Positions 1,085-63,715 of a DNA stretch of 64,000 nt are shown here, piece by piece. This DNA comes from Okamejei kenojei (taxonomy: Eukaryota), in contig CM069154.1 of NCBI GenBank assembly GCA_035221665.1, positions 5,208,001 to 5,272,000 of the forward strand. Direction: 5' to 3'. Each line of letters opens with the position of its first letter. The first letter of the stretch is position 1. The notes below the pieces were generated by a model. That model was not told where the DNA came from. It did not search any database and saw only the letters and a program-made list of their open reading frames with translations. The translations under genes and the position numbers were made by a program.

Positions 1085-1181
1085 CTGATGTGAGACCAAC
1101 AGCGACAAGAACCAACAGAGCGACTGTTCCCCTGGATCTGGGCCGTTTCTGGTGGGTGAATTCTCCCTGTCCCACCGCCAT
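1085..1181 (-). CDS. Leader (signal peptide) exon of a CD300/pIgR-like receptor gene that continues left of the window
   Basis: ATG at 1181 opens MAVGQGEFTHQKRPRSRGTVALLVLVAVGLTS-G: basic stretch, hydrophobic core, then a phase-1 donor TCAG|GTAAAT at 1085/1084. The phase matches the V exons, and a paralog lies upstream of the V exons at 19137-25614. Confidence 0.7.
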
Positions 1182-1230
1182 GTCTCGGCTGCGTTGGATC
1201 GGTTTGGACCCTGCACTGCGTTTGAGTTGT

Positions 1231-1240
1231 CCTCTTCCTC
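1231..1240 (-). promoter_or_regulatory. Possible ETS/PU.1-type GAGGAAG box about 50 nt upstream of the leader ATG
   Basis: Minus strand GAGGAAGAGG, retained in the paralogous copy near 25665-25673. Short motif, may be chance. Confidence 0.2.
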
Positions 1241-1723
1241 ATTCACAACAGAAGTCAAACAGTCAATTCCCGTTTGCTCAGGAAATGACTTTGCAGTGGT
1301 TCGAGACTAAGTTGGTGACTCACTTGCCACCTCCCCCAGCCTCCTCACCACGGACAATGCACCTATCAGGAGTGGGCTGCAATGCTCTCCTGTTGCCTGG
1401 ATTGGAGTATCTCCTCAAAGCTCTGCTTCATCCTGGTGACGTTTGCCCGCTTGTCAGGCACTCTGTCCACCACCGCAAACATTCCCTTGCCCACCACCTC
1501 AACCCCCTCCCTCAAATGCGGGCACACTGTGTCTGAACATGTATGGGATTAGGAGGCAGAGATCAGCCATGCTTGAATGGCGGAGGAGACTCGATGGGCC
1601 GAATGGCCATATTCTACTCCTGGAACGTGTGAACTTGTGAACTATTTGCCCACCTCAAAATGCGTATCACTAATTTGTCCAGCCTTCCTCAGCTTCTCAT
1701 GGTTTGAAACGTTACCCGGGAGA

Positions 1724-2175
1724 AATAGGGCAATGAGGAAACATTTTTTCACACAGAGTGTTGTGAGTCTCTGGAATTCTCTGCTTCAGAGAGCGGTGGA
1801 TGCCGGTTCTCTGGATACTTTCAAGAGAGAGCTAGATAGGGCTCTTAAAGATAGCGGGCTCTTCCAGATGACTTTCTCATGCACTTACTATCCTATCTAA
1901 CTCTCTCTATTCTTCTTATTCTTCCTCTTCTTAAAATATAAAATAAGGAGTGGTACAGGAAATGTATTATGTTATTTTTGGCTTATATCATTGTAATGTA
2001 CATTACTTCTAATAAAGACATTAAAAAAAAAAAAGATAGCAGAGTCAGGGGATATGGGGAGAAGGCAGGAACGGGGTACTGATTGTGGATGATCAGCCAT
2101 GATCACATTGAATAGTGGTGCTGGCTCGAAGGGCTGAATGGCCTACTCCTGCACCTATTGTCTGTTGTCTATTGT
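1724..2175 (+). mobile_element. CR1/HER1-like LINE 3' end interrupted by a 5'-truncated L1 3' tail (about 1858-2033)
   Basis: CR1 tail (..RKHFFTQSVVSLWNSL..; ends ctattgtctgttgtctattg). The insert ends AATAAA plus poly(A) and is flanked by a duplicated AAAGATAGC. Confidence 0.75.
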
Positions 2176-3352
2176 AAAATGCGATCAGATAAGTCAACTC
2201 ATGTCACCAGATAAACTCCTTGAAAGACAATTCAAATATTTGAGCATCGGAGACCAGGTAAAGCTTAGTTTGAGGATGTGATTCATAAAATCATGGAGTG
2301 ATACAGCACGGAAACAGCTTGCCAATGCCGATGAAAATGCCCCGTGTACGCTAGTCCCTCTTTAGTTTAGTTTCGTTTAGAGATACAATACGGAAACAGG
2401 CCCTCTGGCCCACCGTGTCCGCACCATCCAGTGATCCCCGCACAGACATATGGAGTAACTCAATGGGCCAGGCAGCATCTCCAGAGAACATGGATAGGTG
2501 ACGTTTTGGGTTGTGACCCTTCTTCGGGCTGATTGTAGTAGGGGGGAGAAAGCTGGGAGAGAGGTGGGGGAAGGATGAAGCCTGGCAAGTGATAGGTGGA
2601 TACAGGTGAGGGAGAGAGGGTTATTGGCTGATGGGTGGACGATGGCCAGAGATGGAAAGAAGATAAAAGGCTGTGAGATATGGAGAGAAGAGGCATGAAA
2701 TGTGAAGCTGGAAGAAAGGATATATATATGTGGAAAGGGACGGAGGTTAGGGGAAAGGATTGTTGTGGGTTAGTTACTTAAAACTAGAAAATTCAATGTT
2801 CCCACCATTGGGTTGCAATCTGCCCGAGCGGACTATCAGATATTACTGCATCTGTACTTCCTTGTGTCTTCCTGTTTCTCAACCTATCTTGAAGTGAGTT
2901 GCTAGCATTGTGTTGTCACACTGCTACACTGGTGATGGAGAGGCTTGTTCTGGGTGATATTTGTGGGGTTGGGTTTGCTGTAGGTGGAACTGCAACCACC
3001 CCCAGAGACCCTGGTTCGATTCTGACTTCCGGCGCTATCAGTGTGGAGATTGCACGTTCTCCCTGTGACCGTGTGGGTCTCCTCTGGGTGCTCCGGTTTC
3101 CTCCCACATCCCAAAGACGTGTGGCTCTGTATGTTAATTGGCCCTCTTGTCGAATTGCACTCAATGTGTAGGGAGTGCATGCAAAAGTGGTGTAATGTGG
3201 GACTAGTGTGAACGGGTGATCGATGGTCAGCGTGGACTCGGTGGGCCGAACGGTCTGTTTCCATGCTGTATCTCTAACCAGCATGTGATTCCATGCCAAA
3301 TTCTAACTGACAATGGTGCTGTGAAGAACCTTGAGACTTTTCCATCACCTTT

Positions 3353-4620: not shown

Positions 4621-7546
4621 GATGATCAGATCAATCCAGGTCATGTTCATAAGTTATAAGAGCTGAATTAGGACATTCGGCCCATCAAGTCCACTCCGCC
4701 ATTCATTCAATCATGGCTGATCTAACTTTCCCTCTCGACCCTATTCTCCTGCCTTCTCCCCATAACCCCTGACACCGATACTAATCAAGAATCTATCAAT
4801 CTCCACCTTAAAAATATCCATTGACTTTGCCTCCACATCCCTCTGTCGCAATGATTTCCACTTGATTCACCACCTTCTGACTAAGGAAATTCAATCTCAT
4901 CTCCTTTCTCAAAGTATGTCCTTTTATTCTGAGGTTAGTGCACAGATTCATCACCCTCTCTCTCGAGGGTGTCTTGGGTGACTTTCCCAGGCTAACTGAG
5001 CCACACCAAGGGCCAGCGTAGACATCCAGCGAAAGGTCAGTCTGTGGCAGGGTGTGGTGGAGATGCCCCTCTAAATAAGGGAAGGTATTCCACGCCAGTG
5101 GTCCACATGAGTGGCGAGGTGTGGGGTAAATTTGTGTAATTTGTGTAAACAGTATTGAATGTATGTTTCGCCTCCGAGAACGTCGGATGGAGTTTTGTTA
5201 GGATCATGTATTGTATATATTTATTCCTCGAATAAAGTATATTTTGAAATTCAAACAAGAAACGGAGTCAGAGAGTTGTTGGTTCAACTCCCACTCCTGA
5301 AGCCCGAGGACTGAGGGAGTGCGGTACTGAGGGAGCTCGCCACGGCTGGAGGTGAAGTCACTTTGCCGAGGCATTTAGCTGATCTGCTGTCTGCTCTGTG
5401 GCTAAACATAATTCAAGGCGCTAAGTAAATAATTCTAAAGAACAGAGCATTTTATAATGGTTCGCACCAGAATAGTGGAGGATCTCCTTGTTCTGGGGCA
5501 AGAGGTATCCCATCAACCAAGGACACCAAAGTAATCTGTAGGATAGTTGTTGTTTTTTAAAGGGAGCTTGTTGTGTAGTAAAATTAGATGCACACAAGAC
5601 TGCAAGGGCGGAAATGTCGAAATAAGGAACTGCAAATGCTGGTTTATACCAAAGATAGGCACAAAGTGCTGGAGCATCTCAGGGGGTCAAGCAGCTTCTC
5701 TGGAGGATGGGTACCATTTCGGGATGGGACCCTTCAGAGTGGTTCTGACCTCCGAACTACCCCATTCGAGACCTTGGAACTATCTTTAATCGGATTTTAC
5801 TAGACTGTATCTTGCACTGAACATTATTCCCTTTATTCCGTACCGGTACCCTGTGGATGGCTTGATTGTAATCGTGTACAGTGTTTTCACTGACTGGATC
5901 GCGTAGAGCAGAAAAGCTTTTCACTCCACCTCAGTACACGTGACTATAATAGGTTAAACTAAAGAGGTTGCCACAGATTCCTTGAATGCAAACATGACAA
6001 GTCATCGTGGTGCTTCCTCATTTCAGAAGCGGTTGGGTTTCACAAGCTTCTTCTATGTGTGACCTGTGGTCTAGGTTCAACATTTCCCACGCTGTTTCTA
6101 GCAGGAGTCCTGTGTGAGTTTACCACGCTAACCGAGCCACACCAAAGCCCAGTGTTGGGTTCTACAGTGCAAGCTCAGTGGGTGAGTTAGAGAGATGTTG
6201 GTTCAGTTCCCACTCCAGAACGCCGAGCACAGAGGGAGAGCTGTACTGAGGGAGCTCCGCATTGGAAACATAGAAGCATAGAAAATAGGCGCTGGAGTAG
6301 GCCATTCGGCCCTTCGAACCAGCACCGCAATATGATCTTGACTGATCAACCTAAATCAGTATCCAGTTCCTGCTTTCTCCCCATATCCCTTGATTCTGTT
6401 TTATCCTAAGCGCTGTGTCTAAAGTTGCTGGAGGTGCTGTCACTGTGATGAGGCATTTAACTGGCCTGCTGCTCTGCTGTCTGCTCTCTCCAGCCTGCTC
6501 TCTCTCTTCAGTGTGGCACGGTGCTGCAGCGGTTAGCTGCTGCCTCACAGCGCCAGAGACCCGGGTTCGATCCTGACTACGGGTGCTGTCTGCGTGGAGT
6601 TTGAACGTTCTCAATGTGACCTCGTGGGTTTCCTCCAGCTGCTCCGGCTTCCTCCCACATCCCTAATACATGCGAGTTTGTAGGTTAAATACCTCTGCAA
6701 GATTGTCGCAAATGTGCAGGGAATGGATGAGAAAGTGGGATAACAGAACTAGTGTGTACAGGTAGACAAAAATGCTGGAGAAACTCAGGGTTTTTATCTA
6801 CCTTCGCTTTTCCAGCATCTGCAGTTCCTTCTTAAACACAGTGTGTACAGGTGATCAATGGTCAGCGTGGACTCGGTGGGCCAATGGGCCTGTTTCCATG
6901 CAGTATCTCTAAACCAAACTAATTCTACTCTTATCACTTATGGTCTTATGACAAAAATTCAGCCATCTTTTATTACATTGGATTATTTTAATCATTATTC
7001 AATATGCAGGGTTTTACACAGCAATTCAATTGGTAGTAAAGTTAAAAGTTCACATTCTGGAGAGCTAGCTTTGAGTTCTAATCTATGTACTGCTGTCTTT
7101 TGGGCGAATGTCAGGATGTACAGACGTGTCTGCAAACATAGGTACAGAAGTTAACCATTTGCTCCATCGAGTCTACTTCGCTATTCTTCTAACGTGTGTC
7201 CACAGTTCAATACTTGTAATCATTTAACCGTTTTTATATCCCCATTGCTCAATGGTTCAATGGTACTTTAGCGGCACCCGATCCACCGGCTGCTGCAGGG
7301 CCTCCAGCAGCCCACTCGCACTCCGCCCACACCTCGACCCACCAACGCACCCTTTTCCCCTCGTCTCCCATGGCTGTCTCCATGCGAGGTGAGGCCCCAC
7401 CCAACCAGCTCACCGACGCTGATCCTCTCCTCCCTCCACCACTGCTGACCCCATCTCCAAGGTCTAGGTTGTTTTTTTCCTTGAATAACAATTAAAACAC
7501 AGTTTATAATCACTTCCATCAAATTTTACCCAAGGAAATGACCCAG

Positions 7547-7822
7547 GGCGGCACAGTGGCGCAGCGGTAGAGTTGCTGCCTTACAGCGCCAGAGACCCGG
7601 GTTTGATCATGACTACGGGTGCTGTCTGTACGGAGTTTGTATGTTCGGCCTGTGACAGCGTGGGTTTTATCCGGGTGCTCCGGTTTCCTCCCACAATCTA
7701 AAGACGTGTAGTTTTGTAGGTTAACTGGCCTCTGTATAATCGTAAATTGTCCCTCGTGTGTATGACAGTGCGAGTGTACGGGGTGATCATTGGTCGGCGC
7801 GGACTTGGTTGGCTGTAGGGCC
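7547..7822 (+). mobile_element. HE1-like tRNA-derived V-SINE (representative; other copies near 2990, 6515, 12590, 17870, 27497, 41797, 49810 minus, 51770, 53262, 54425, 57360 minus, 62460)
   Basis: GGCGGCACAGTGGCGCAGCGGTAGAG..GGTT(C/T)GATC A/B boxes, conserved central domain; intact copies end in a ctaaa-type tail. Confidence 0.85.
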
Positions 7823-7824
7823 TA

Positions 7825-9485
7825 CAGTGCCCTCCATAATGTTTGGGACAAAGACCCATCATTTATTTTATTTTCCTCTGTACTCCACTTTTTGAGATTT
7901 GTAATAGAAAAAATCACATGTGATTAAAGTGCACATTGTCAAATTTTAATAAAGGCCATTTTTACACATTTTGGTTGCACCATGTAGAAATTACAGCAGT
8001 GTTTATTCATAGTCCCCCCATTTCAGGGCACCATAATGTTTGGGACACAGCAATGTCATGTAAATGAAAGTAGTCATGTTTACAATTTTGTTGAAAATCC
8101 TTTACATGCAATGACTGCTTGAAGTCTGCGATTCATGGACATCACCAGTTACTGGGTGTCTTCTCTGGTGATGCTCTGCCTGGCCTGTATTGCAGCCATC
8201 TTTAGTTTATGCTTGTTTTGGGGCGAGTCACCTTCAGTTTTCTCTTCAGCATATAAAAGGCATGCTCAATTGGGTTCAGAATGACTTGGCCACTCAAGAA
8301 TTGACCATTTTTTCACTTTGAAAAATCCTTTGTTGCTTTTGCAATATGTTTGGAATCATTGTCTTACTGTAGAATGAAGTGCCGGCCTATGGGTTTTGAG
8401 GCATTTGTTTGAACTTGAGCAGATAGAATGTGTCTATACACTTCAGAATTCATTATGCTACCACCATCAGCAGTTGTATCATCAATGAAGATAAGCGAGC
8501 CAGTACCTTCAGCAGCCATACATGCCCAGGCCATAACACCCCCACCACCGTGTTTCACAGATGAGGTGGTATGATTTGGATCTTGGGCAGTTCCTTCTCT
8601 TCTCCATACTTTCCTCTTGCTATTAATCTGATATGTTAATCTTCGTCTCATCTGTCCACAAGATCGTTTTTCCAGAACTGTGGTTGCTCTTTTAAGTACT
8701 TTGTGGCAAACTGTAAACTGGCCATCCTATTTTTGCGACTAACCAGTGGTTTGCATCTTGCAGTGTAGCCTCTGTATTTCTGTTCATGAAGTCTTCTTCG
8801 GACAGTCGTCATTGACAAATCCACACCTGACTCCTGAAGAATGTGTCTGATCTGTCGGACAGGGTGTTTGGGGGATTTTCTTTATTATAGAGAGAATTCT
8901 TCTGTCATCTGTAGAGAATTCCTCTGTCATCTGTAGAGAGGTCGTCCTTGGTCTTCCAGTCCCTTTACGATTAGTAAGCTCACAAGTGCTCTCTTTCTTC
9001 TTAATGATGTTCCAAACAGTTGATTTCGGTAAGCCTAATGTTTGGCTGGTTTCTAACAGTTTTTTTCTTGTTTCTCCGTCTCATAATAGCTTCTTTGACT
9101 TTCATTGGCACAACTTTGATCCTCGTGTTGATAAACAGCAATAAAAGTTTCCAAAGGTGATGGAAAGGCTGCAGGAAAGACTAGGTGCTGAGAGCTTTCT
9201 TATACCTGCATTAAGGAGGCAATTAAACACACCTGAGCAATTACAAACACCTGTAAAGCCATGAGTCCAAAACATTATGGTGCCCTGAAATGGGGGGACT
9301 ATGTAAAAACACAGCTGTAATTTCTACATGGTGAAACCAAAATGTATAAAAATACCCTTTAATATAATCTGACAATGTGCACTTTAACCACCTGTGATTT
9401 TTTATCTTACCAATCTCAAATTGTGGAATACAGATGCAAATAAATAAATGAAGCGTCTTTGTCCCAAACATTATGGAGAGCACTG
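7825..9485 (-). mobile_element. Decayed Tc1/mariner transposon, IR/DR (Sleeping Beauty-like) type
   Basis: TA|CAGTGCCCTCCATAATGTTTGGGAC ... GTCCCAAACATTATGGAGAGCACTG ends; ~230-bp TIRs with an internal repeat of CCATAATGTTTGGGACA; transposase fragment VKHGGGGVMAWACM..FILQ at 8364-8651. Confidence 0.92.
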
Positions 9486-9583
9486 TTTGTCCACACTTTA
9501 TCTTCATAATTCTAAAGTAAATTCCCATCACTCCCAATTGAATTTAATGTGAACACCAAAGTGAAGAGATTGCAAGCTTTTAC

Positions 9584-9690
9584 CTTTTAAAGTTGTCACA
9601 CAGCAGGTGGAAACTGGGAAGAGAAGCAGAACTCGAAAAAGTACCCAGCGTAACACACTCCAAACACGGCGAACATTCAACACGATGACC
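9584..9690 (-). CDS. Putative transmembrane exon with intramembrane Arg (activating-receptor type)
   Basis: Acceptor TTTCCAG|G, donor AAAG|GTAAAA; encodes VIVLNVRRVWSVLRWVLFRVLLLFPVSTCCVTTLK; lies downstream of the V exons on the same strand. Confidence 0.6.
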
Positions 9691-9885
9691 CTGGAAATCC
9701 AAGGAAATATTATTACAGAGTTATCGAAGATTAACACTGGGAATTTTGTTTCATCATATTGCACACGGAATCATTCAGTGTGATCCAAGGTTGTGGCGTA
9801 GACATTGGTGAGATGTTTATATCGCAACATGCACCCATTCCTTGGAGGTGTTCCATGACTACATACATTAACAACTTAGATTAGA

Positions 9886-11882
9886 TTAACAACAAGAAGG
9901 CAGCAACTGACAGTCAACACACCAACCTGGAGGAGTATTCTGCGTCTGCGTCTGCTTACATGGAAAAGTGTGTCACCAAGACCATCACTATACAGGCCAA
10001 CCAGAAACCCTGGATGACCCCTGAGGTACGTGGAATGCTGAGAGCACGAAATGCCGCGTTTAAATCCGGTGACTTGTTGGCACTCAGATCCGCAAGAGCC
10101 AACCTGAACCGAGTCATCAGGCTGGCAAAGCGTGCCCATGGTCAGAAAATCCAGAGCTTCTTTCATGACCCAATGAACGCCAGGCGCATGTGGCAGGGAA
10201 TCAAAACAATCACGGACTATAAGACTGCTCCACCACCCTGTGAAGACAACATTAACTTCCTCAATGAACATAATATATATTTTGGACGGTTCGAGGCATT
10301 CAACAACACTCCTGCGAGAAAAGGTATTCCTCACTGTGATGAACAGGCACTCACTCTTGATACAGTGGATGTCCGGAGGACCCTAAAAGGAGTGAACACA
10401 CGGAAGGCAGCATGCCCTGATAACATACCACGTCGGGTGCTCAGAGAATGTGCTGATCAGCTGGCACATGTCCTTACTGACATCTTCAACACCTCGCTGA
10501 ACCAGGCTGTCGTCCCATCATGTTTCAAGACTGCCACCATCATACCAGTGCCAAAACAATCCGCAGTAACATGTCTCAACGATTACCGCCTGTAGCACTC
10601 ACTCACATAATGATGAAGTGCTTCGAGAGGCTGGTCAGGGACCATATTACCTCCAGACTTCCCTCCACACTTGACCAATACCAGTTTGCTTACAGGCCAA
10701 ACTGCTCCACAGAGGACGGCATATCCTCCGTACTCCATCTGAGCCTGGAACATCTAGAGGAGAAGAACACACATGTGCGAATGCTGTTCGTGGACTTTAG
10801 TTCAGCATTCAATACAATTATCCCTCAGCACCTGGTAAGCAAACTGGGTCCATTGGGCCTCAGCACCCCCTTGTGTAACTGGCTACTGGACTTCCTCACT
10901 GACAGACCCCAGTCAGTGAGGGTTGGAAACACTTCTAACATCATCTCACTGAGCACCGGCTCCCCTCAGGGCTGTGTCCTGAGTCCACTGCTGTTTACCC
11001 TGATGACCCACGACTGTTGTGCCAGGTTTAGTACAAACCACATCATGAAGTACGCAGATGACACAACAGTGGTGGGCCTTATCCGGGACGACAATGAACT
11101 GGCTTACAGGGAGGAGGTGAAACAACTGGTGGACTGGTGCAATATGAACAATTTGATCCTGAATGTTGAAAAAACAAAGGAGGTCAACTTCAGGAAAACC
11201 GGTCACATACCACTTCACATTAATGACAGCGATGTGGAGTTGGTCTGTAGCACTAAGTTCCTGGGGGTGCAGATCACTAACAGTCTGAACTGGTCAGAAA
11301 ACATCGCATCATTAGTTAAGAGAGCACAGCAGCGTTTGCACTTTCTGCGCCGGATGAGAAGAGCTCACCTCCCCCATCCCGTCCTCACTACCTTCGACAG
11401 GGGCACCATAGCGAGCATTCTGACCAGCTGCATCTCTGTCTGGTTTGGGGCCTGTAAAGCCTCCGACTGGATGTCCATGCAGAGAGTGATGAGGACGGCT
11501 GAAAAAGTTATCGGGACTTCTCTCCCCTCAATCGGGGACATTGCGAGTAAACGTTGCTTGTCTAAGGCCAGCAGTATTATAAAGGAGCCCACACATCTCC
11601 ATCATGTTCACTCTGCTGCCCTCGGGCAAATGATATTGTAGCATAAGGAGCAGAACGGCCAGGTTTTGCAACAGCTTCTTCCCCCGAGCCATCAGACTCT
11701 TGAATGCCATGTGATAGGCTGCCACCATTATCTATTTTATCTTTTTATCCATTTTATTCATTTTATCCTTCTGTTATTTTTGTGTTGCACAGGGAGCCAG
11801 ATGCATCAAAATTCTGTCTAGAATTGCATTTACTGATGTATTTCTGAATTACAATAAAGTTTTGATTGATTGATTGATTGAT
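9886..11882 (+). mobile_element. 5'-truncated Rex1/Babar-like non-LTR retrotransposon
   Basis: ORFs 9960-10595 and 10520-11641 (one frameshift): [38 protein letters not shown]; ends AATAAA plus (GATT)n. Confidence 0.9.
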
Positions 11883-14245: not shown

Positions 14246-14566
14246 CTTCAGAAACCTTCAATGAGATGGATGTCCTTTCATCGAAGTTCAATGGTATGTC
14301 TATCTCACACCAGTAGCGTCCTTCATCACTCTTCTCCAGGTTGTCGATGGTTACTGAAACTATCCGTTGTGTTTTGTTATCAGTCATCGATGTTCTCCCT
14401 CGTCGTGGGTCATCAGTATAAACCACGGTCTTAGATAACAGGTAATAATCACCTTTAAGCCATCGCTTCCTGTTGTCACTGTATTCCCGACCATACTGAC
14501 ATTCCAGAGTGACCGACTGCCCCAACTCTCCCCTCACCTCCTTGGGTCCAGTTATTCCCCTTGACC
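14246..14566 (-). CDS. Ig V-set exon, CD300/pIgR-like (intact, 321 nt)
   Basis: Acceptor CCAACAG|GG and donor GAAG|GTACG, both phase 1; ITGPKEVRGELGQSVTLECQY..W..GRTSMTDNKTQRIVSVTIDNLEKSDEGRYWC..ISLKVSE. Confidence 0.9.
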
Positions 14567-35696: not shown

Positions 35697-35862
35697 GGGG
35701 GGACTATGTATAAACACAGCTGTAATGTCTACATGGTGTAACCAAAATGCTATGGAGGGCACTGTATGTCCACACTTTAACTCTATAATTCTAAAATAAA
35801 TTCCCATCACTCCCAATTGAATTTAATGTGAACACCAGAGTGAAGAGATTGCAAACTTTTAC

Positions 35863-49413: not shown

Positions 49414-49727
49414 CTTTAAACATCGCGGTTTTAGCCTGTGAGATCCCAATGTCGACTGGTGTCCTGGCCCCACACCAATATTCCCCCACATCTCCTTCAT
49501 CAGTGTTCCTGATCGTGATAGCAAAGTTGTTGAATTTGTTCCCACTGATTGATAATTTGCTGCTGTTGTAGTGATGAGGTGTCGCTATGATGCGGCAACT
49601 ATTCACAGAGACGACTTTACACAAGATTTCTCATATTCTTCAAATTGCACCTTGTACCGGCAATGTATAGTGGTGGCATTGCCCATTACGCCCTTGACTG
49701 TGGTACGGTTTAGTATCCGTGAATCTG
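49414..49727 (-). pseudogene. Ig V-set exon, CD300/pIgR-like, with an apparent 1-nt deletion at about 49626 (real or assembly error)
   Basis: 314 nt between a NAGNAG acceptor and AAAG|GTATC; TVKGVMGNATTIHCRYKVQFEEYEK/(x)LCKVVSVNSCRII..FAITIRNTDEGDVGEYWCG; both the B-F and the C-C' cysteine pairs are present. Confidence 0.8.
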
Positions 49728-51070: not shown

Positions 51071-51382
51071 CTGTGAATACATCCAGCACGACAATATCTG
51101 AAACATGGATTCCATTTGTCTGAATAGTTCCACACCAGTATGTTCCTGCATCATTCTTCTGAAGTTGACTTGTTACAAAAACAGACCCATTGAGTCTTCT
51201 CATTGATATCCTTCCACTACGGTTCTCATCTTGCTGAGTGTTGACTATTATTTGACACTCTTTTCGAGAATAGGCTTTGCACCAGCTGACAGGTCCTGTT
51301 TTCTGAGCGTTTGGACATTCTATAGTCACTGTTTCTCCCTCGCCAGCTCTTATCGCCATCAGGTGAAGCTGTGCTAGGGAAC
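51071..51382 (-). CDS. Ig V-set exon, CD300/pIgR/TREM-like (intact, 312 nt)
   Basis: CCCAACAG|GT acceptor, ACAG|GTAAGA donor, phase 1; AGEGETVTIECP..SWCKAYSRKECQIIV..GRISM..LQKNDAGTYWCG..VVLDVFT, with the family C-C' disulfide. Confidence 0.9.
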
Positions 51383-54300
51383 CTGTTGGGTGAAATTTAA
51401 TGCTGGAGATTTTTACAGAATCACATCAAAATATTCCCATAACCACCCCCCCCCTCCCCCCGCCAGACATAATTTCATGTTCATAAGTTATAGGAGAACA
51501 TTTAGGCCATTCGGTTCATCGTCTGTCCCGCCATTCAATCATGGCTGATCTATTTCTCCCTCTCAACCCAATTCTCCTGCCTTCTCCCCATAACCCCTGA
51601 CCCCTTTACGAACCAAGAATCTGTGAATCTCCGCCTTAAAAATACCCAATGACTTGGATTCCACAGCCATCTGTGGCAATGAATTCCACAGATTCCCCAT
51701 CCTCTAAAGAAATTCATCCACAACACCTTTGTTCAGGTATGTCCTTTGTAACAGGTACAGGTACAGGACAGTAGCGCAGGGGTAGAGATGCTGCCTTACA
51801 GCGCCAGAGACCCGCGTACGTGTGCAGTCTGTACGGTATTTGTACGTTCTCCCTCTGACCTGGTTTTCTCCGGGTGCTCCGGTTTCCTCCCATACTCCAA
51901 AGACGTGCAGGTTTGTAGGTTAATTGGCTTCGGTAAAAATCGTTCCTAGTGTATAGGATGGAACTAATGTGTGGGGTCAGCTTCGACTCGGTGGGTCGAA
52001 GCGCCTGTTTCCACGCTGTATCTCCAAACTAAACTAAAACGTCCTGTTATTTTGAGGCTGTGCACTCTGGTCCTAGACTCTCCCACCAGTGGAAAACATC
52101 CTCTCCACATTCACTCTATCTCCAGGCCTTTCACTATTCGTTAAGTTTCAATGTCCCCCTCATCCTAAAATGGGAGGTGGGAGGAAACTGGAGCATCCGG
52201 AAGAAACCCATATGTGACGGGGAGAAACTCCACAAAGACAGCATCCGAGGAAGGATCGTACTGTAAAAATCTTCTGTGCTGCATCTTCACTTTAAAAGCA
52301 TAGAACAGTACAGCACAAGAACAGGCCATTTGGCCCACAATCACCATGCTGAACATGATGCTATGACCAACCCCTATCTGCCTGCTCATCATCCATATCT
52401 TCCCATTCCCTGCATATCCATCTGCCCCTACCAAGGACTCTTAAAAACTGATTGACATAGTGGGGCATTCTCCCCATCCCCCTCCCCCCACCGCAGTCAG
52501 TCTGAAGAAGGGTCCCGGCCCAAAATATCACCTATCCATGTTCTCTAGAGATGCTGCCTGACCCGCTGAGTTACTCCAGCACTTTGTATCTTTTTTCTCT
52601 TACATGCATGTGCCAGTCCGAAAGTCTCTTAAATCCTCTGTTAAATCCCAGACTCTTGTCACAGTTCGTTTTAACTCTTGCTAAAATGTAAAGTTAATTG
52701 GTTCCTTTCTAGGCTCCTGGTCCTTTGGCTGAACAGCAGCGTATCATCACTTATTTAAATAACAAGAGCTAATCTTCACGTTAACATATAACTGCGCTAT
52801 GGTTCCATGACCATGTTGATGGGGCAGAATTAGGCTGTTCGGGCCATCATGTCTACTCTGCCATTCAATCATGGCTGATCTATCTCTCCCTCCTAATCCC
52901 ATTCTCCTGCCTTCTCCCAATAAATGCTGGAACCCGTATTAATCCGGAATCTGTCCATCTTAGCTTTCAGAAACAGCAGAAAGTAAAACATCGTGGTTCC
53001 AGAGAGAGAGAGGTCCTTGTTTGCCAATGAAGCGGTCTCATTCACTTTGGGGGATTAACTGTGGTTGGCAGAGGTTTGGACAGAAGACAAGCTGAACTGA
53101 AGCAGGTTTCCAGTGAGGGTATCCACAACTTGCGTGGTCATATCCCAATCCTGCCATCCTTAAAGATCAGTGTTGGGAGATGCACTTTTAAAATTAATAC
53201 TTTGTAATCCAATGTAGAATAAGGAACATTGACAAACAACCTGTTTTCACAACTTGCTGAACTTACAGCGCCAGAGACGTGGGTTCAATTGTGACTATGG
53301 GTGCTGTCTGTACGGGGTTTGTTCGTTCTCCCCATGACCGTGTGATTTTCTCCGGGTTGTTCCGGTTTCCTCGCACTATCCAAAGACGTGTGGATTTTGT
53401 AGGTTATCTGGCTTCGCTAAGTTGTAGATTGTCCCTAGTGTGTCGGATAGTCCTAGCGTTACGGGGTTGTCTCCAGAGAAGCTGTCTGACCCGCTGAGTT
53501 ACTCCGGCTTTTTTGTGTCTACCTTCGGTTTAAAACCGGCATCTGCAGTTTCTTTCCTAAACAGTTGAAATGATTCCTTCATGGCTGGGAAGAGTGCTGA
53601 TAAGATTTATCAGGATTTTTACCAGGACTCGAAGTTCTGAGCTACAAGGAGGATGTGTCTCACCCTGGCCACTCCCTCTTCTCCCCTCTCTCATCAGGCA
53701 AGAGGTACAGAAGTTTGAAAACGCACACCTGCGGATTCACGGAGTTTCTTCCTTCCTTCATGTTATCAATGAAACGGAACCTTCTTATTACTAACTAGAG
53801 AGTGATCCTGACATACCCATCTACCTCATTGGAGACCATTGCACCATCTTTAATTGGACTTTACTGGACTAACTTGCACTAAACTTACGGTATTTCCCTT
53901 TATCCTGTATCTGTACACTGTGGGTGGCTTGATTGTAATCACGTATTGTCCTTTAGCTGACTGGATGGCATGCCAGAAAAAAGTGTTTCATTGTGCCTTG
54001 GTCCATGTGATAAACTAAATGATAAACTAAACTAAATTTGGATAATCTAGGACTTTATATTCCTTGGAGCACAGGAGGCTGAGGGGTGATCTTATAGAGG
54101 TGTATACAATCATGAGGAGGAATTGATAGGGTGAGTTCAGAGTCTTTTACCCAGAGTAAAAGGGGAATCAAAATCCAGACAAGTTTAAATTGAGGGGGGA
54201 GGGATTTAATAGGAACCTAGGGGCAAGCTTTTTCACTCATGTGGATGTGAATGTGGTGGGTATATGGAACGAGCTGCCAAAGGAGGTAGCTAAGCGAGCT

Positions 54301-55216: not shown

Positions 55217-56720
55217 TCGCGAATGTGAAAACGAGGAATTATAGACCAGTTAGTCTTACATTGGTAGTGGGGTAGATGCTGGAATTGATTATTAAGGATG
55301 TTATAGCAGCGCATTTGGAACGCAGTGACAGGATCGGTCAAAGTCAGCATGGATTTATGAAGGGGAAATCATGCTTGACTAATCTTTTGGAATTTTTTGA
55401 GGATGTAACAGGTAGAATGGATAAGGAGGAGCCAGTGGATGATGAGTATCTGGACTTTCAAAAAGCCTTTGACAAGGTCCCACACAAGAGATTAGCGTGC
55501 AAAATTAGAGCACATAGTATTGGGCGTAGGGCATTGACATGGATAGAGAACTGGCTGGCAGACAGGAAGCAAAGGGTAGGAATTAACGGGTCTTTTTCAG
55601 AATGGCAGGCAGTGACTAGTGGGGTGCCACAAGGCTCGGTGCTGAGACCCCAGTTATTTACAATATATATTATCAATTTAGATGAGGGAATTAAATGTAA
55701 ACATTACTAAGTTTGCGGATGACACAAAGCTGGGTGGCAGTGTGAGCTGCAAGGAGGATGCTAAGAGGCTGCAGGGTGACTTGGATCGGTTTAGTGAGTG
55801 GGCAGAGGCATGGCAGATGGAGTATAATGTGGATAAATGTGAGGTTATCCACTTTGGTGGCAAGAACAGGAAGGCAGATTATTATCTGAATGGTGTCAGA
55901 TTAGGAGAAGGGGAGGAGCAACAAGACCCTGGGTGTGCTTGTACATCAGTCACTGAAAGTTAAGCATGCAGGTACAGCAGGCAGTGAAGGAAAGCCAATC
56001 ATTGGCCATCATTGCAAGAGGATTTGGGTTTTGGAGCCAAGGAAGTTCTACTGCAGTTTGTACAGGGCCCTGGTGAGACCACACCTGGAGTATTGTGTCC
56101 AGTTTCGGTCTTCCTAATTTGAAAAAGTACATTATTGCTATTGAGTGAGTGCAGTGTGATGTTCACCAGGTTAATCCCAGGATGACAGGGACTGACATAT
56201 GATGAAAGAAATGGTTCAACTGGGCTTGTATTTGCTGGAAAATTAGAAGGATGAGTGGGGATCTTATTAGAAAACATTAAACATTCTTGGAGGATTGGAC
56301 AGGTTAGATGCAGGAAAAATGTTTCTCGATGTTTGGGGAGTCCAGAAACCAGGGGTTATTGTTTAAAAATAAGGAGTATGGGCATTTTAGACTGAGATGA
56401 GGAAAAATCTTTTCACCCAGAGAGTTATGAATCTGTGGAATTCTCTGCCACCAAAGGCAGTGGAGGCCAATTCACTGCATTGTATTCAAGAGAGAGTTAG
56501 ATTTAGCTCACTTAGGGTTAAGGGAATCAGGTGATATGGGAAATAGCTGGAACGGGATACTGATATCACTGAACCTTAATTGGTGCATGTGGACAGTAAA
56601 TGTGAACTTGAATTTGATTTTTGGATGATCAGCCATGATCATATTGAATGGCGGTGCTGGCTCAAAGGGCCGAATGGCCTACTCCTGCACCTATTTTCTA
56701 TGTTTGATGTTTTCTATGTA
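55217..56720 (+). mobile_element. 5'-truncated CR1/HER1-like LINE
   Basis: [40 protein letters not shown]; ttctatgt tail; many indels. Confidence 0.92.
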
Positions 56721-58977
56721 CTGTTCAGTACAAGTATCACTATACATAAAGCACTTAGGACATATCTTAGATAAGCATCTCAGATACAGTACAAGTGTAT
56801 AGCACTGGTGCATTGAGACAGTGTGCAGAGTTTAGCTCCCATACCTGCAGGAAAACCACAGTGAGGGCATTTTGTGACAGTGCTGCACTGATAGTGAAGC
56901 ATTTTAAAAAAATTTTTGAAAACTTGAAAAACTGTTAAAATTACAACTAAATGTGTCCTGTTCTCCTCTGCTAGACGAACAAGAGCAATGAGAATTGCCA
57001 GCAGAAATGTGGTGTGTTGTTTAAATATTTAAAGTTGTTTGGATGGTCAGTAATCAATAATTGCATTCAATCAACCCCCCACCCCTCCTCACCTGTATCC
57101 ACCCATCACTCAACCACATTTTGTGCCCCCCCCACTCCCACGCCTCTTCCCAGTTTAATAATCAGAGGCTTTTTCACGAGGGTCAGCACGGTGACGCAGC
57201 GGTAGAGTTGCTGCTTGGAGGACATTGCTATTGAAACAACTTCTCTTTTCCACATGAGTAGTGAAGCTCGATTGTAGACCGATGGTCCTTATGATGCAGC
57301 TGACTTTGCTTCAAGCTGTTGATTTTTCCCATTTCTCATCTAATAATGTAATGCTTTAGTTTGTGTTTTAGTTTAGAAATACAGTGGTGGAAAACGGGTC
57401 CTTCGGCCCGCTGAGTCCACATCGACCAGCGATCGCCCACGGCACTAGTTCTATCCTACACACTACGGGCAATTTACAGAAGCCAATTAACCTGCACATC
57501 TTTGGAATGGGAGGAAGGCCAGAGAAAGCCCACGCGATCACAGGGAAAACGTACAAACTCCACACGGACAGAACCCGTGGTCAGGATCGTAGCTGGGTCT
57601 TCTGCGCCTGCAGCATGAGGGCAGCAAAATCTACCGCTGTGGCACTTTGCTTTAGACTTTAGAGAGATAGAGGCCCTTTCGGCCCACTGAGGCTTTTAGA
57701 TAGTATGGTATGGTACGGTTATTTGTCATGTAACGAGGTACAGTGAAATTCATTTTTGTTACATTTCAGTACAAGTATAAGATAGGCACATGGACATGCA
57801 GGGGGTGGAGGGATAGTGGACTATGTGCAGGCAGATGAGATCAGTTTAACTTTGGCCTCATGTTTTTTGGCCCATGGACAATGTGGGCCGAAGGGCCTGT
57901 TCCTGTGCTGTTCTGTGTTCTACGTCCATCCGCAAAACCACCTTCGACAAAGTCAGTAGGATCTTGGGCTCACCAGGTATTCAGAAGACAAGTGTACTTT
58001 ATTGTATGCTTACAACATCTCCCATGTCATCTGTAGATGTTTCACTACAAAACATTTGAACATATTTACACAATCTCTCACTTGCGATTCCTGTTCTTCA
58101 TACACATATTTGCAAGCCACTGCGCTTCGCGTAAACATTCACAAAATACAGGGAAATTAAAGCAATGGAAATTAAAGCAATTAAAGCAGTGGAAAGCACG
58201 TGGTCCTGTTTCCGCACTGTCTGACTCTGTGACTTAGTAACAGAACTGTTTTTCTTGGTAAACTGGATGGTGGAAGGTCAACCAGTGAGTTTTAACAACA
58301 AGCCGACAGTTTTGTGTCCAACAGTACATATACATATTTATTTTTTAATCACAAATTAATAGCAGTTCAAATTCCACAGCTGTTCTAATTGAGGCAAAAG
58401 AAAAATGGTGGAAAATCTCAACATGTTCGGCGGGCATTTGTGGAAGCGGAACGGAGTGATGAAATCCCTGGAATAACCTGCTACTGACGGTAGGGATTAT
58501 TGAGGCTGGATAATTAGGGGTATTTAAAGAAGGAGTTTGAAGGGGCAGGGAGTCGAGGGCATTGAGGAAACTGAGGGACACAGGAGAGGAGATGAGGTTG
58601 GAGGCAGATCAGCCATTATTGTGTTGAATGGTGGATATTGGCTTGAAGGGCTGAATGGCTATTTCTGCTCTTATTTTCCCTACGTTGAATACTAACTCAA
58701 CAAGAGACATACAGCACGGACCAGGCCATTTGGCCCAATTTGTCCTTGCCAACCATCTCTTGATATTGGGGGTCCCTACCACTTACCCGCATTTGGCCCA
58801 TATCCCTCTAAACCTTTCCTATCCATGTAATCTATCCAAATGTCTTTTTAAATGTTGTTAATATTCCTGCCTCAAACTACCTCCTCTAGCAGCTTGTTCT
58901 TACACCCACCACTCTGAATGAAAAGGTTGAACCTCGGGTTCCTACTAAAAATCTTTACCCTCCACCTTAAGGTCACG

Positions 58978-60379
58978 AAACTATCATGTATCTCTGTTTT
59001 TCTATCTCCATCAGGTGCTGCATGACCTGCTGAGTGTTTTTTTCATTTTCATTTTCGGCACGGATATTGTGGGCCGAAGGCCTGTTGTACTTATCTATGT
59101 TCTATCTTTTATCAGATTCCCCAAATCTGCAGTTATCTGATGACCATGCACTGTTCTTGGTGAGATCTGAACGCAAATGTCTGGATTTGTGGGTAAGCAA
59201 AGACAATTTTACCAGACTGTCCGTTTCAATGCATTCTTGGTGTTCTTCCGGTAGAATTAAATTATTATCTGTGGAAGAATTGTGGCGTAAACAAAACTTT
59301 GCGGCCCTTGGCTCTTGGCTTGTCCCTTGTGTGTTCAGATCCTGGAAGGTTCATGTAAGTTATTCTCCTTGCTAAGCTTGAGGGAAACGCGTTGTCACGG
59401 TGGTATAAATGACAGGGGTTGCCTATTGGAGTCAAGTGAGAAAACATAATTACTTTAAAGATAGTGTCAGAAGGTAGACAAAAATGCTGGAAGAAAAAAA
59501 CTCAGCGTGTGAGGCAGCATCATGGAGGCGGAAGGTTTAGGTGACGGTTGTCGGGTCGAGGGACCCTTTCAGTGAGTACTGGGGAAGTGGGCGGGGGGTT
59601 ACAGAGATAAATTGTTAGGGTTTTACGACCCGGAAACGTCAACTTTTCCTTCGCTCCATTAGTGCTGCCTCACCGCTGTGTTTTTCTCCAGTCATTTTTG
59701 TATAACTTCGATTTTTTCCAGCATGCATGATGTTCTCTTCTTAAAGATAGTGTCAGGAGTGTGTTATTGTCATACTTGTCTCAAGTTGTGTTGTGGAGGA
59801 GGAGGAGAGGGACACAATACACACACAACACACACGTAAAAGTGGCAAAAATGAATAAAAAACCTATACCCCCAAGGGATAATTAGTTGGACCATATTTG
59901 GGGGTGATTGTGTTTAATAGCCTCATGGCTGTAGGGGATGATAGCTGTTCCTGAAACCTGGGGACGTTCCAGTTTTGTGGATGACGATGGCAGTGGTTGA
60001 AAGGAGGGAGCGCGGCCAGGGTTTGCTAGGGGGTCTCGATGGCTGCTGTCTGCCTTTTTTTGAGAAACAGGCATACAAAAATTCAGAGGTTAACACTCTG
60101 GGAGAAAAAGGAATAGTTGGGCATTTTGGGTCGAGAACCTTACGTTCAGACCTAAACATATATTAACTTAGTTTAGTTTTAGAGATGCTGATTGGAAACA
60201 GGCCCCTTGGCCACCAAGTCACGTGACCATCAGTCCCAACCCATTCACCAGTTGTTTCCATGTTATCCGCTTTCGCATCCTACCACACTGGGGGGCAATT
60301 TACAGACAGCAATTAATCTTCAAACTGACCGTCATTGGAATTGTGGGAGCAAAACCGGATCACCCGGGAGCAAACCGGC
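58978..60379. repeat. Left arm of an inverted duplication; reverse complement of about 62555-64000
   Basis: Unique and repeat segments are colinear in reverse complement, with dense small indels. Confidence 0.9.
59258..59422 (-). CDS. Terminal cytoplasmic exon with ITIM-type motifs (indel-corrupted)
   Basis: Acceptor CTCCAATAG|GCA; reads ATPVIYTTVTT, then across indels TYMNL and VYATIL. Confidence 0.6.
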
Positions 60380-60879
60380 NNNNNNNNNNNNNNNNNNNNN
60401 NNNNNNNNNNNNNNNNNNNNNNNNNNNNNNNNNNNNNNNNNNNNNNNNNNNNNNNNNNNNNNNNNNNNNNNNNNNNNNNNNNNNNNNNNNNNNNNNNNNN
60501 NNNNNNNNNNNNNNNNNNNNNNNNNNNNNNNNNNNNNNNNNNNNNNNNNNNNNNNNNNNNNNNNNNNNNNNNNNNNNNNNNNNNNNNNNNNNNNNNNNNN
60601 NNNNNNNNNNNNNNNNNNNNNNNNNNNNNNNNNNNNNNNNNNNNNNNNNNNNNNNNNNNNNNNNNNNNNNNNNNNNNNNNNNNNNNNNNNNNNNNNNNNN
60701 NNNNNNNNNNNNNNNNNNNNNNNNNNNNNNNNNNNNNNNNNNNNNNNNNNNNNNNNNNNNNNNNNNNNNNNNNNNNNNNNNNNNNNNNNNNNNNNNNNNN
60801 NNNNNNNNNNNNNNNNNNNNNNNNNNNNNNNNNNNNNNNNNNNNNNNNNNNNNNNNNNNNNNNNNNNNNNNNNNNNNNN
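60380..60879. other. Scaffolding gap (500 N)
   Basis: Run of exactly 500 N. Confidence 1.
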
Positions 60880-61670
60880 TTGAAGTATGGTTGTGTAAAG
60901 TTGGAGTGGATTTAATTGAAGTTTAGGCGGTGGTTTACGGAGATTATATAGAACCTGCTGAAAGAGAAAAGTATTGACGGGTATAAGGATATTTAAGAAA
61001 CGCAATATTAAGATAATTAAGGAAGTTGACAGTGGCATCAATGGAAAAGATTAAAGAACCCAAGGATAACTACAAAATTGTTCATCCCTGTCTGGTGAAA
61101 AAAATAAAACTGGAGAAGTCAATCTCGAAGTGACTGATGAGTAAAGTCACGAAGTGTTAAGATCCAAATGAAGAGGCATATAAATTTGGCCAAAAGAAGT
61201 GGCAAAACCAAAGGACTGGGAGAATGTAGATCTCAAACAGGGAGATAAAGGGGTTTAATTAAAAGGGTGAATAAGACAAGAAAGAAAGCTTGCGGGGAAT
61301 ATAAAAACAGACTTTCTAAAACTTTCTTCTTTAGGTATTAAAAAGGAAAAGATTTGTGAAGGCGGAAGTAAGTCCCTTACAGTCCAAGAGACAGGTGGAT
61401 TTATAATGGGAAACAAGGGAATGACAGAACAGGTTTAAACTAGTACTTTGGTTCGTTTCACTGAGGAAGACACAACCAATCTCCCCGGAAATACTGTGGG
61501 GTCCGAGGATTCTAGTGGGATGGAGGAAATTAAGGCAATCCACACTAGTCAGTAAAATGGGTGTTTAGGGTAAACTTTTAGGACTGAAGGGCCAATAAAT
61601 CCCCCAGGAGCCCCCCCCTGATGGTCTGCGAACCCAATGTACTCAAGGAAGCAGCCCTAGAAATCGGTGA
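60880..61670 (+). mobile_element. CR1-like LINE internal fragment, low-quality sequence
   Basis: Degenerate tether region ending in KSPGPDG-like coding (aaatcccccagg..cctgatggtctg..gtactcaaggaa). Confidence 0.7.
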
Positions 61671-62056
61671 AGGGTAAAAATCACAAACAGCGAACCATCA
61701 AATGAGTGAGCCCGGCGAAACCCCACTTTCCCCAGAATGCGGGAACTCCTCATGGTTGACCAATGAAGGCGACTTCCTTCTTTCCCCCGGCAATCACCCC
61801 ATCAACCCGCGAACATGTGGCGGACATATGGCGACTTGTGGCGACTGGCATTGTCACCCCCTCCTGCAGTCGCCTAAAAAGTCTCCTCCTAAGTGGGACA
61901 AGGTAAAAAAAAAAGAGAGAGGCCCATTAACTTTTCATGAAAAGGTGCATCAATAAATGACATCACTAGGGATAAAAAATGCATTAACATGTATCCTTTT
62001 TTGCGTGACTTCAAATGAAGTCCATATGAGAATTAATTATCAGTTATATTTTTCAG

Positions 62057-62142
62057 GGCAGGCTCGAAATGGTACAGAGAAGAAATTATGAATCAGGAAA
62101 ATCCAGCAGAGAAGAGTTTCACATCAAATCAATTCACTCACG
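62057..62142 (+). CDS. Candidate cytoplasmic exon upstream of the plus-strand ITIM exon copy
   Basis: Strong acceptor TTATATTTTTCAG|G and donor ACG|GTAAGA in non-repetitive sequence; frame uncertain because of read errors. Confidence 0.35.
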
Positions 62143-63549
62143 GTAAGAGGGCAATGCCCACACAGCATGTTATGGCCGCAGGGAAATAAAAAACAAAACA
62201 AGAACCTTACTGGATACATTAGTCCCTGAACGGCCGCACATCACATGACCTATCGATCAACTTGACTACCTTTTGACTGCTTATAACATGGGCACCTTTG
62301 TTTTTTTTTTGTATGGGGGTGGGTGGGGGGGTGGGGGGGAGGGGGGTGGTGGTGGGGGGGGGGGGGGGGGTTGGTGTGTTGTTGGTGAGGTGTTGGAAAT
62401 GAATCGTTACCATCCTTGTCGGTCGGTTTCCCTTCGTCGCTCTGGACTTGGGAGGACCCAGGCAACCACAACTCAACGCAACAACATCTGGGTTCCATCC
62501 TACCTCGGATGTTGTCCCTGTGCATGTTTGCACGTTCTTTCCCCTGTGACCGCCCCCCGGGTTTTCTCCGGGTGATCCGGTTTGCCCCACATTCCAATGA
62601 CTGCAGGTTTGTAAAAAAAGCTTAATTGGCTTCTGTAAATTGCCCTCCAGTGTGTAGGATGCGAAAGCGGGATAACATGAACAAAACTGTGAATTGGGTG
62701 ACTGGATTGGTCTTGGGGGGGGGGGGGGGGGGGGACGGTGGACTTGGTGGCCTAGGGGCCTGTTTCCTTCAGCAATCTCTAAACTAAACTAAGTAATTAT
62801 TTTAGGGGTTCTGACGAAGGGTCTCGACCCCAAAAATGCCACCTATTCCCTTTTTCCCCTCTCCAGAAGATGTTACTATTACTCACTTTCCTGCATTTTT
62901 GTGATGCTGTTCTCAAAAAGGCAGTCCCAGCAATCAATCAATCGAGGACCCTCACACCCTGGCCGCTGCCTCATCCTTGTCCACCTCTGCCAATCGGCAG
63001 TCCCAAAAACTGGAACGTACCAGGTTCAGGAACAGCTTCATTCCCTACAGCCAGAGCTATTAAACACAACAACCCCCAAATATTGGTCCAAACTAATTAG
63101 TCTTGGGGGCATTGGTTTAATCTTTTTTTTTGCACTTTTACGTGGTGTGTGTGTTGTGTATGTTGTGTCTCTCTCTCTCTTTCCTCACACATCTGAGACA
63201 TATGACAATAAAACACTCCTGACACTATCTATTAAGAAAGAAACTGCAATCTGGAAAATCGAAGGTAGACAAAAATGCTGGAGAATCTCAGCGTGTGAGT
63301 CAGCATCTATGGAGCGAAAAGGAATAGGTTACGTTTCCGGGTCGAAACCCTATCATTTTATCTCTGTAACCCCCCCCCGCCCACCTCCCCTGACAACAGT
63401 CCTGAAGGTCTCGACCCGAAAACGTCAACCTAAACCTCGCTCCATTAGATTTCTATGGCCTCACACGCCTGGGGAGTTCTCCAGCATTTTTGTCTACCCT
63501 ACTGCCACTATCTTTTTAAGTAATTATGTTTTCTCACTTGACTCCAAAG

Positions 63550-63715
63550 GCAACCCCTGTTCCATTTATTACCACCGTGACAACGACGTTCCCCCAGCTA
63601 GCACGGAGAATACTTACATGAACCTTCAGGATCTGAACACACAAGGACAAACCAATAGGCAAGGTGCCGCAGAAGTTGGTGTACGCAACAATTCTCACTG
63701 ATAATAAATTAATTT
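63550..63715 (+). CDS. Inverted second copy of the ITIM-bearing exon (indel-corrupted)
   Basis: ORF track shows PASTENTYMNLQDLNTQGQT..QGAAEV and, in the next frame, LVYATIL. Confidence 0.55.

Follow-up and report, generated by a model that had tools for sequence, protein, structure and literature searches.

A 64,000-nt stretch of the genome of the skate Okamejei kenojei (assembly GCA_035221665.1, contig CM069154.1, positions 5,208,001-5,272,000 of the forward strand; hereafter the window) was analyzed for genes of immunoglobulin (Ig) receptors related to the CD300/CMRF35-like molecules and to the polymeric immunoglobulin receptor (pIgR). The window consists of vertebrate DNA with many long interspersed nuclear elements (LINEs) and other repeats. 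Besides the Ig genes, its open reading frames (ORFs) were of LINE and transposon origin only, and no non-Ig host gene was found. Ig exons were located by tblastn with the open V-like ORFs of the window, and the exon map was obtained by tblastn of annotated skate proteins onto it. Five V-set Ig exons were found on the minus strand, each flanked by an AG acceptor and a GT donor and in phase 1 on both sides. V16 (16590-16913), V15 (15443-15759) and V14 (14246-14566) form a 1.2-kb tandem repeat at 14-17 kb, while V51 (51071-51382) and V49 (49414-49727) are the first and second Ig exons of a two-Ig unit. V14, V16 and V51 were intact. V15 was a recent copy of V14 (97.5% identity) in which a 4-nt deletion shifted the reading frame, and V49 was frameshifted as assembled. 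A first-pass annotation of the same DNA, made by a model from the letters and their ORFs, had proposed that leader and V exons share phase 1, and the splice sites read here (AG/GT at the V exons and a leader donor after position 1085) agreed with this.

The exons were searched singly, with Pfam for the V-set assignment and with phmmer against the PDB for comparison with solved structures. All five Ig exons were recognized by Pfam as V-set. V14, V16 and V51 exceeded the Pfam V-set cut-off (E 5e-14, 2e-15 and 1e-10, respectively) and contained the canonical B-F disulfide. The D.G.YWC-type motifs were read as DEGRYWC, DAGTYWC and DVGEYWC. V16 matched CD300LF/CLM-1 at E 2.5e-15, with 59.9 bits as one domain, and pIgR at E 1.6e-31, a value summed over five domains of which the best single one reached 38.7 bits; its matches to antibody light-chain variable domains were at 1e-9 or weaker, and NKp44 (1hkf) came at 9e-6. 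V51 matched pIgR at 8e-24, CD300 at 3e-7, FcmuR at 7e-3 and NKp44 at 9e-3, and among the 60 best PDB matches of V16 and V51 there were no TREM chains. A grouping of the V domains with TREM/NKp44 was therefore rejected on the weak NKp44 values. The comparison supported a placement of the V domains with CD300/CMRF35-like molecules and pIgR, the family named by the first-pass annotation, and the far weaker scores of NKp44 and antibody domains spoke against an unrelated family of the Ig superfamily. A second intradomain disulfide in the C-C' region (W-C-[KR]…C) was present in V51 (SWCKAYSRKEC) and in the read-corrected V49 described below (FLCKVVSVNSC). The extra Cys pair was absent from V14, V15 and V16, which read RWLKG… without Cys, and likewise from the skate relatives P0001 and P0042 introduced below. 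The differences between V14 and V16 were concentrated in two loops, with a ratio of nonsynonymous to synonymous change (dN/dS) of 2.2 that was based on few changes and is not proof of selection. Behind each V exon of the 1.2-kb repeat there were G-runs or G-rich tracts (14040-14170, 15230-15360 and 16260-16500); tracts of this kind often attract indel errors during assembly, and unequal crossing-over may also be favored by them.

A word search retrieved two A. radiata proteins named 'CMRF35-like molecule 3' (P0001 and P0002), to which V14 was 72-76% identical. With V51 as the query, a full HMMER search gave 468 proteins, the best of which was L. erinacea LOC129708894 (P0003, 283 aa). It was followed by RefSeq models that bear the name 'polymeric immunoglobulin receptor-like' or 'CMRF35-like molecule 8' and belong to Mustelus, Narcine, Pristis, Hypanus, Heterodontus, Heptranchias, Hemitrygon, Scyliorhinus, Pristiophorus and Callorhinchus. 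The nearest proteins were skate RefSeq models, which fitted the elasmobranch host deduced in the first-pass annotation. Its statement that these receptors are poorly characterized in elasmobranchs was overstated, as RefSeq models of the 'pIgR-like'/'CMRF35-like' family were found in at least 11 chondrichthyan species, although our literature search found no paper describing chondrichthyan CD300/pIgR-like genes or their adaptors. For the shark data of that time, Akula and Hellman (2014; PMC4016189) reported that no PIGR homologue was found. A domain tree built from the V domains of the window and their cartilaginous-fish relatives, without mammalian members, grouped V51 with domain D1 (support 89/79) and V49 with domain D2 (94/88) of L. 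erinacea P0003. The first pair lay in a batoid D1 clade supported at 99/99 and the second in a batoid D2 clade supported at 100/99. V14, V15 and V16 fell within a skate CLM3-type clade (97/93), in which V14 and V15 were sisters (100/98).

Read from 5' to 3' on the minus strand, the exon map started with a transmembrane (TM)-like exon and a tail exon at 59.8 and 59.3 kb, followed by a leader fragment at 53.0 kb, V51, V49, a TM exon with an arginine (Arg-TM) at 35.9 kb and a tail at 27.4 kb. It continued with the first part of a leader at 25.6 kb, the rest of that leader at 19.17 kb, V16, V15, V14, a stalk at 12.9 kb, an Arg-TM exon at 9.6 kb, a tail at 7.4 kb and a further leader at 1.1 kb. This order resolved into about four gene units, the number implied by the first-pass annotation: the 1.1-kb leader; a three-V unit from 25.6 to 7.4 kb; a two-Ig unit at 53.0-49.4 kb together with the orphan TM exon at 35.9 kb and the orphan tail at 27.4 kb; and the TM-like exon and tail at 59.8 and 59.3 kb. 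None of the units was complete as assembled. The minus-strand orientation claimed for the exons was right for the leaders, the five V exons, the two Arg-TM exons, the two tails and the stalk, but at 62.9-63.7 kb a copy of the TM-like and tail exons lies on the plus strand. The leader exon at 1085-1181 (minus strand) was intact, with an ATG at 1181, a phase-1 donor after 1085 and 94-97% identity to residues 1-33 of A. radiata P0001 and P0002. Its gene is the next one downstream, and the body of that gene continues before the start of the window.

The leader exon of the three-V unit was found in two parts on the minus strand. The 5' part (25539-25614) has its ATG at 25614 and one extra G in a G-run compared to the 1.1-kb leader, and the 3' part (19136-19172), which includes the donor region, is one G short of it. 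The two parts are separated by a full-length or nearly full-length, 6.4-kb L1-like LINE on the plus strand (19173-25538) with endonuclease and reverse transcriptase (RT) ORFs, a poly-A at 25.53 kb and a 15-bp target-site duplication, ACTnTGTTGGCTCTT. The homology to the intact 1.1-kb leader picks up exactly past the LINE, and 1026-1120 aligned to 19078-19171 at 90.5% identity. Within this LINE there was also a coiled-coil ORF1-like region, the endonuclease/RT ORFs were in five pieces, and the two copies of the target-site duplication differed by one mismatch; the element seems to have been inserted fairly recently. Downstream of V14, a Ser/Thr-rich stalk exon running from phase 1 to phase 2 was mapped by tblastn with P0001 and P0002 to 12913-12997 (minus strand), and it was shorter than those of the relatives. 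The Arg-TM exon (9584-9690, minus strand; …VWSVLRWVLFRVLLLFPVS…) was 107 nt long, compared to the 108 nt needed by the frame of the annotated skate relatives, with a T lost from a T-run before the donor, and it had a second Arg at a position where the relatives have Gly. The short tail exon (7410-7479, minus strand), found by tblastn with the P0002 tail, contained an in-frame TAG where the 27.4-kb copy reads GAG. The three-V gene is thus broken as assembled, by the LINE in its leader exon and the frameshift in its middle V exon, V15.

The two-Ig unit was the part of the window that could be compared with reads, as the read check covered 48.9-53.1 kb alone and used Logan contigs from two DNA runs (X1 and X4; two samples, two studies). 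In both sets an extra base was present at full depth behind position 49625. With this base V49 (minus strand) had an open frame (…EYEKFLCKVVSVNSC…) that matched the L. erinacea relative, and the corrected exon contained the extra Cys pair of the CD300/pIgR type (…EKFLCKVVSVNSC…). Because both DNA read sets carry the base, the V49 frameshift is either an assembly error or a private allele. The two read sets also differed from the assembly by a 1-nt indel at 51410. Over roughly 1.5 kb of unique sequence, there were about two fixed indel disagreements between reads and assembly. The mismatches at 49625, at 51410 and at four sites in the V51 exon suggest either that the assembly contains indel errors or that the reads stem from a different haplotype or individual. 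Given this rate of disagreement, 1-nt lesions in exons are unreliable as a sign of decay, and since the reads removed the V49 frameshift, 1-nt frameshifts were rejected as pseudogene evidence. No exon-exon joints were seen in the read contigs across 48.9-53.1 kb.

Upstream of V51, a leader fragment was found at 52971-53015 (minus strand; …DLSLSGTTMFYFLLF) with a weak tblastn match to P0003 (E 0.054). Its homology ended at the start of a dispersed repeat, no usable donor was present, and read depth jumped at about 52988. Downstream of V49, the interval from 36 to 49.4 kb was searched by tblastn, for which the C-terminal ends of six relatives served as queries, and by blastn, for which the 9.4-19.2-kb unit was used; no fitting stalk, TM or tail exon was found, only dispersed repeats. 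An Arg-TM exon was found at 35863-35969 (minus strand; 107 nt, one T lost mid-exon) with neither a stalk nor a matching V exon upstream, and an open, Tyr-free tail exon, KKTAEILEMGSAVVEGGEDQRR followed by a stop, at 27361-27430 (minus strand). Splicing of V49 straight to the 35.9-kb TM exon was considered and rejected, as phases 1 and 2 are incompatible when no stalk exon lies between them, and the 35.9-kb TM and the 27.4-kb tail were treated as orphan duplicates.

Both Arg-TM exons and their short tails matched annotated relatives, in agreement with the activating-type parts described in the first-pass annotation. An activating receptor of this family is recognized by a charged TM and a short tail free of Tyr; Arg was found in both TM exons and the tail reads KKTAEILEMGSAVVEGGEDQRR, so that the presence of activating-type exons in the window is well supported at the level of predicted protein sequence. 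A pIgR is recognized by at least two tandem pIgR-type V domains, of which there were three at 14-17 kb and two at 49-51 kb, and by a TM without charge that leads into a long cytoplasmic tail with sorting or transcytosis signals; instead, an Arg-TM with a tail of about 25 residues was found in the three-V unit and in the annotated relatives. In a crude scan of the relatives, 24 combined a charged TM with a short tail and 30 combined an uncharged TM with motifs resembling the immunoreceptor tyrosine-based inhibitory motif (ITIM). The TM of Callorhinchus P0059, ILRWIFFGVLALCPVSV, has the motif LRW..FG.L.L.PVS in common with the skate Arg-TM exons, and since a chimaera keeps the skate motif, the Arg-TM appears to be a conserved interaction surface.

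The candidate inhibitory part of the cluster lies near the end of the window, where an inverted repeat surrounds a run of N. An inhibitory member of the family would be recognized by an ITIM ([ILVS].Y..[ILV]) in an open cytoplasmic tail. The left arm (58976-60376) ends 4 nt before the gap (60380-60879), and the right arm (62560-63998) reaches the end of the window, so the redundancy may continue beyond it. All exons and gene models were confined to one side of the gap; ORFs spanning it were runs of X. On the minus strand, 59230-59882 holds a TM-like exon, in which PQIW… is followed by a hydrophobic run derived partly from a (TG)n tract, and a tail exon with the ITIM-like motifs ITYMNL and FVYATI. 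The features at 62.9-63.7 kb in the right arm are a plus-strand inverted copy of these, with the motifs NTYMNL and LVYATI. Microsatellite-like (TG)n/(TC)n tracts at 59796-59835 and 63147-63186 encode the second half of the TM-like stretch (…CVLCVYCV…), and the TM call is for that reason weaker than its hydrophobicity suggests. The two ITIM-like motifs lie in different frames in the minus as well as in the plus copy. A word-based protein search with residues 55-266 of the ORF that covers TM and tail on the plus strand (62901-63698) gave 268 candidates, none with E <=1, a blank that does not show absence. Compared with a set of 162 proteins, the tail aligned weakly and locally to tails of shark proteins (E 0.13). 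The inhibitory-type parts named by the first-pass annotation would correspond to the ITIM-like motifs at 59 and 63 kb, but these need frame jumps and occur in two noisy inverted copies beside a gap, and an inhibitory type within the window is only hinted at.

The origin of the two copies was judged from the differences between the arms, which are about 80% alike and have the gap and some 1.7 kb of sequence between them. They differ by 136 indel events, of which 124 involve just 1-2 nt, and by 83 substitutions, or 1.64 indel events per substitution, and transversions outnumbered transitions by 63 to 20. Six other duplicate pairs in the window had 0.07-0.23 indel events per substitution, and transitions prevailed in five of the six. 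Such a profile resembles that of uncorrected long-read noise, and the arms are probably one real locus seen twice at a poorly polished contig end. The copies might instead be a genuine old palindromic duplication of the decayed 3' end of an ITIM receptor, leaving two pseudogene fragments. An identity of just about 80% would fit this, as would the 1.7 kb and the gap between the arms, unlike the abutting halves of a fold-back read, but the excess of 1-2-nt indels, seen in none of the other pairs, the excess of transversions, at odds with five of those six pairs, and the stop of one arm at the scaffold gap make an old palindrome unlikely.

Duplication was also evident outside the V exons and the inverted arms, as 1107-1735 is similar to 25539-26165, 7270-8906 to 27221-28835, and 9472-9868 to 35751-36155. 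Remnants resembling a Tc1/mariner transposase (…HGGGGVMAWACMAAEGTGSLIFIDD…) were observed at 8364-8651 and 28176-28592, a label that comes from reading the sequence, as Pfam had no match for the 28.2-kb ORF. They lie inside the second of these segmental duplications, and because the remnant sits in both copies, the element landed before the segment was duplicated. Four further LINE fragments with RT or endonuclease ORFs were found on the plus strand, antisense to the receptors, at 9960-11641, 29976-30643, 43238-46875 and 55276-55963. The segmental and exon duplications, the transposons and the orphan exons together fit birth-and-death evolution, as the first-pass annotation had suggested for the locus.

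The reading that we favor, with a probability of roughly 75%, is that the window holds part of a skate CD300/CMRF35-like ('pIgR-like') cluster that is growing and decaying by local duplication. In this reading, a gene with three V domains, an Arg-TM and a short tail would be disabled in the assembly by the LINE in its leader and the frameshifted middle V exon. There would also be a two-Ig gene, an ortholog or close paralog of L. erinacea LOC129708894, with sound Ig exons, a leader apparently cut by a repeat and 3' exons that were not found, besides orphan duplicates of the Arg-TM and tail exons. The features at 59 kb would be the 3' end, a TM with an ITIM-like tail, of an upstream gene, the two inverted copies most likely representing a single real one. 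Several observations weigh against this reading. The assembly is the sole source for the 4-nt deletion in V15, the TAG in the tail, the remaining 1-nt lesions and both junctions of the LINE, and the LINE at 19173-25538 could be haplotype-specific. The read contigs depart from the window at four sites within the 312-nt V51 exon, and their source may be a different individual or a very close paralog. No sequencing run recorded as RNA contained the 48.9-53.1-kb stretch, and two runs taken to be RNA, one of which is probably DNA, gave just repeats and one 230-nt contig of low depth inside the V51 exon. A link between V49 and the 35.9-kb TM exon is unsupported by the exon phases, and the view that the inverted repeat is an artefact comes from error statistics, not from reads.

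A rival explanation is that the locus is a fully working set of paired receptors, with functional activating and inhibitory members, and that each break stems from an error of the assembly or from haplotype variation. The V49 frameshift was absent from two DNA read sets, and at about two fixed indel disagreements per 1.5 kb the five 1-nt lesions in exons could all be errors. However, a 6.4-kb LINE with a poly-A and a target-site duplication in the leader exon is no base-calling error, the 4-nt deletion in V15 lies outside a homopolymer run, the homology of the 53.0-kb leader is lost at a repeat boundary, and no fitting stalk, TM and tail exons were found for the two-Ig unit, so that an intact locus appears rather improbable. 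That one of the genes is the skate polymeric-Ig receptor proper, which would carry polymeric IgM by transcytosis, has in its favor the RefSeq name 'polymeric immunoglobulin receptor-like' of the relatives, the tandem arrays of three and two pIgR-type V domains, and the top rank of pIgR in the PDB when its five domains are summed. The name is automatic, though, the three-V unit combines a TM Arg with a tail of about 25 residues, the best single-domain match of V16 was CD300LF (59.9 against 38.7 bits), and V14, V15 and V16 are without the extra Cys pair; we regard a true pIgR here as the least probable of the explanations, to be given almost no weight. A variant with only slightly more to recommend it, and still a long shot, is that the multi-V Arg-TM receptors, which have three V domains both in the window and in L. 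erinacea, could form an activating, adaptor-coupled branch of the pIgR/CD300 family that binds polymeric IgM, with a TM motif kept from chimaera to skates and a domain number reshaped repeatedly by tandem exon duplication. If they did bind polymeric IgM, they would be a cartilaginous-fish counterpart of Fcalpha/muR or of a pIgR precursor.

What the analysis shows for the favored cluster of CD300/CMRF35-like genes is sequence, exon structure and homology; beyond these, a mode of action can be proposed. In intact family members the V domains would bind ligand, and the conserved TM Arg would pair with an acidic residue of an adaptor bearing an immunoreceptor tyrosine-based activation motif (ITAM), such as a DAP12-, FcRgamma- or CD3zeta-like protein, and lead to activation; in members with an uncharged TM and an ITIM tail, recruitment of SHP/SHIP phosphatases would lead to inhibition. 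Pairing of a charged TM with ITAM adaptors is known for CD300, TREM and NKp44. Adaptor pairing, ligand binding and expression of the skate genes are presumed. The first-pass annotation had described the locus as one of paired receptors, which was borne out at the level of the family, where the same two-Ig ectodomain occurs with ITIM tails in Pristis and with an Arg-TM in Hypanus and Mustelus, but not for the units in the window, which are incomplete. The window is an ordinary, partly decayed part of a known, machine-annotated family, in which assembly artefacts mimic decay, and with its units broken or incomplete it adds little biology by itself. Its interest lies in the group it belongs to, the CD300/pIgR-like receptors of cartilaginous fish, which have been modelled by annotation pipelines and are apparently unstudied. 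The family indicates that activating and inhibitory pairing on a common ectodomain, together with an Arg-TM motif found from chimaera to skates, dates to the base of jawed vertebrates, and tandem duplication of V exons is ongoing in it. In practical terms, pseudogene calls based on frameshifts need read support in this genome, given its indel errors and a contig end that is probably redundant and inverted.

The closest known counterpart of the three-V unit is L. erinacea XP_055510911 (P0042, 468 aa, 'polymeric immunoglobulin receptor-like'), which likewise has a leader, three tandem V domains, a stalk, an Arg-TM and a similar tail. The existence of this protein indicates that the V triplet is a genuine architecture rather than an oddity of the assembly. 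P0042 and the A. radiata proteins P0001 and P0002 have in common with the three-V unit the leader MAVGQGEFTHQ…, the V type (61-76% identity), the Ser/Thr stalk, the TM motif VLRWVLFG.LLLFPVS and the tail …TLEMGSAVVE.GE.QRR. The three-V unit differs from them by the LINE in the leader, the 4-nt deletion in V15, the shorter stalk, the second Arg in the TM and the TAG in the tail, and compared to P0042 the duplication that gave V14 and V15 is recent and the window's own. L. erinacea P0003 stands in the same relation to the two-Ig unit, with 78% identity in D1, 85-89% in D2 and phase-1 exons. The two-Ig proteins of other batoids and sharks (Pristis P0006, Hypanus P0010 and Mustelus P0004) have D1 and D2 types with the extra Cys pair, as in V51 and V49. 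These proteins end in an uncharged TM with an ITIM-like tail (Pristis P0006, whose D1/D2 ectodomain is followed by three ITIM-like motifs) or in an Arg-TM (Hypanus and Mustelus), whereas no TM or tail was found downstream of D2 in the window copy.

Compared to pIgR, for which human, mouse and two-domain fish structures have been solved, the window has in common the tandem V domains of one subtype that arise by exon duplication, and pIgR gives the best summed PDB score. The window genes differ from pIgR in having a charged TM and no long sorting tail. Mammalian CD300 is a clustered multigene family whose members have charged TMs or ITIM tails. Its solved members (CD300LF/CLM-1, CD300A and CLM-6) have the V-set fold, the D.G.YWC motif and the order of stalk and then TM in common with the skate proteins, and the extra Cys pair with V51 and V49. 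In contrast to the single V domain of mammalian CD300, proteins of the skate V14-V16 type are without the extra disulfide and have one to three tandem V domains, and in the skate type, compared to mammalian CD300, the charged residue is an Arg that sits close to the TM's outer third.

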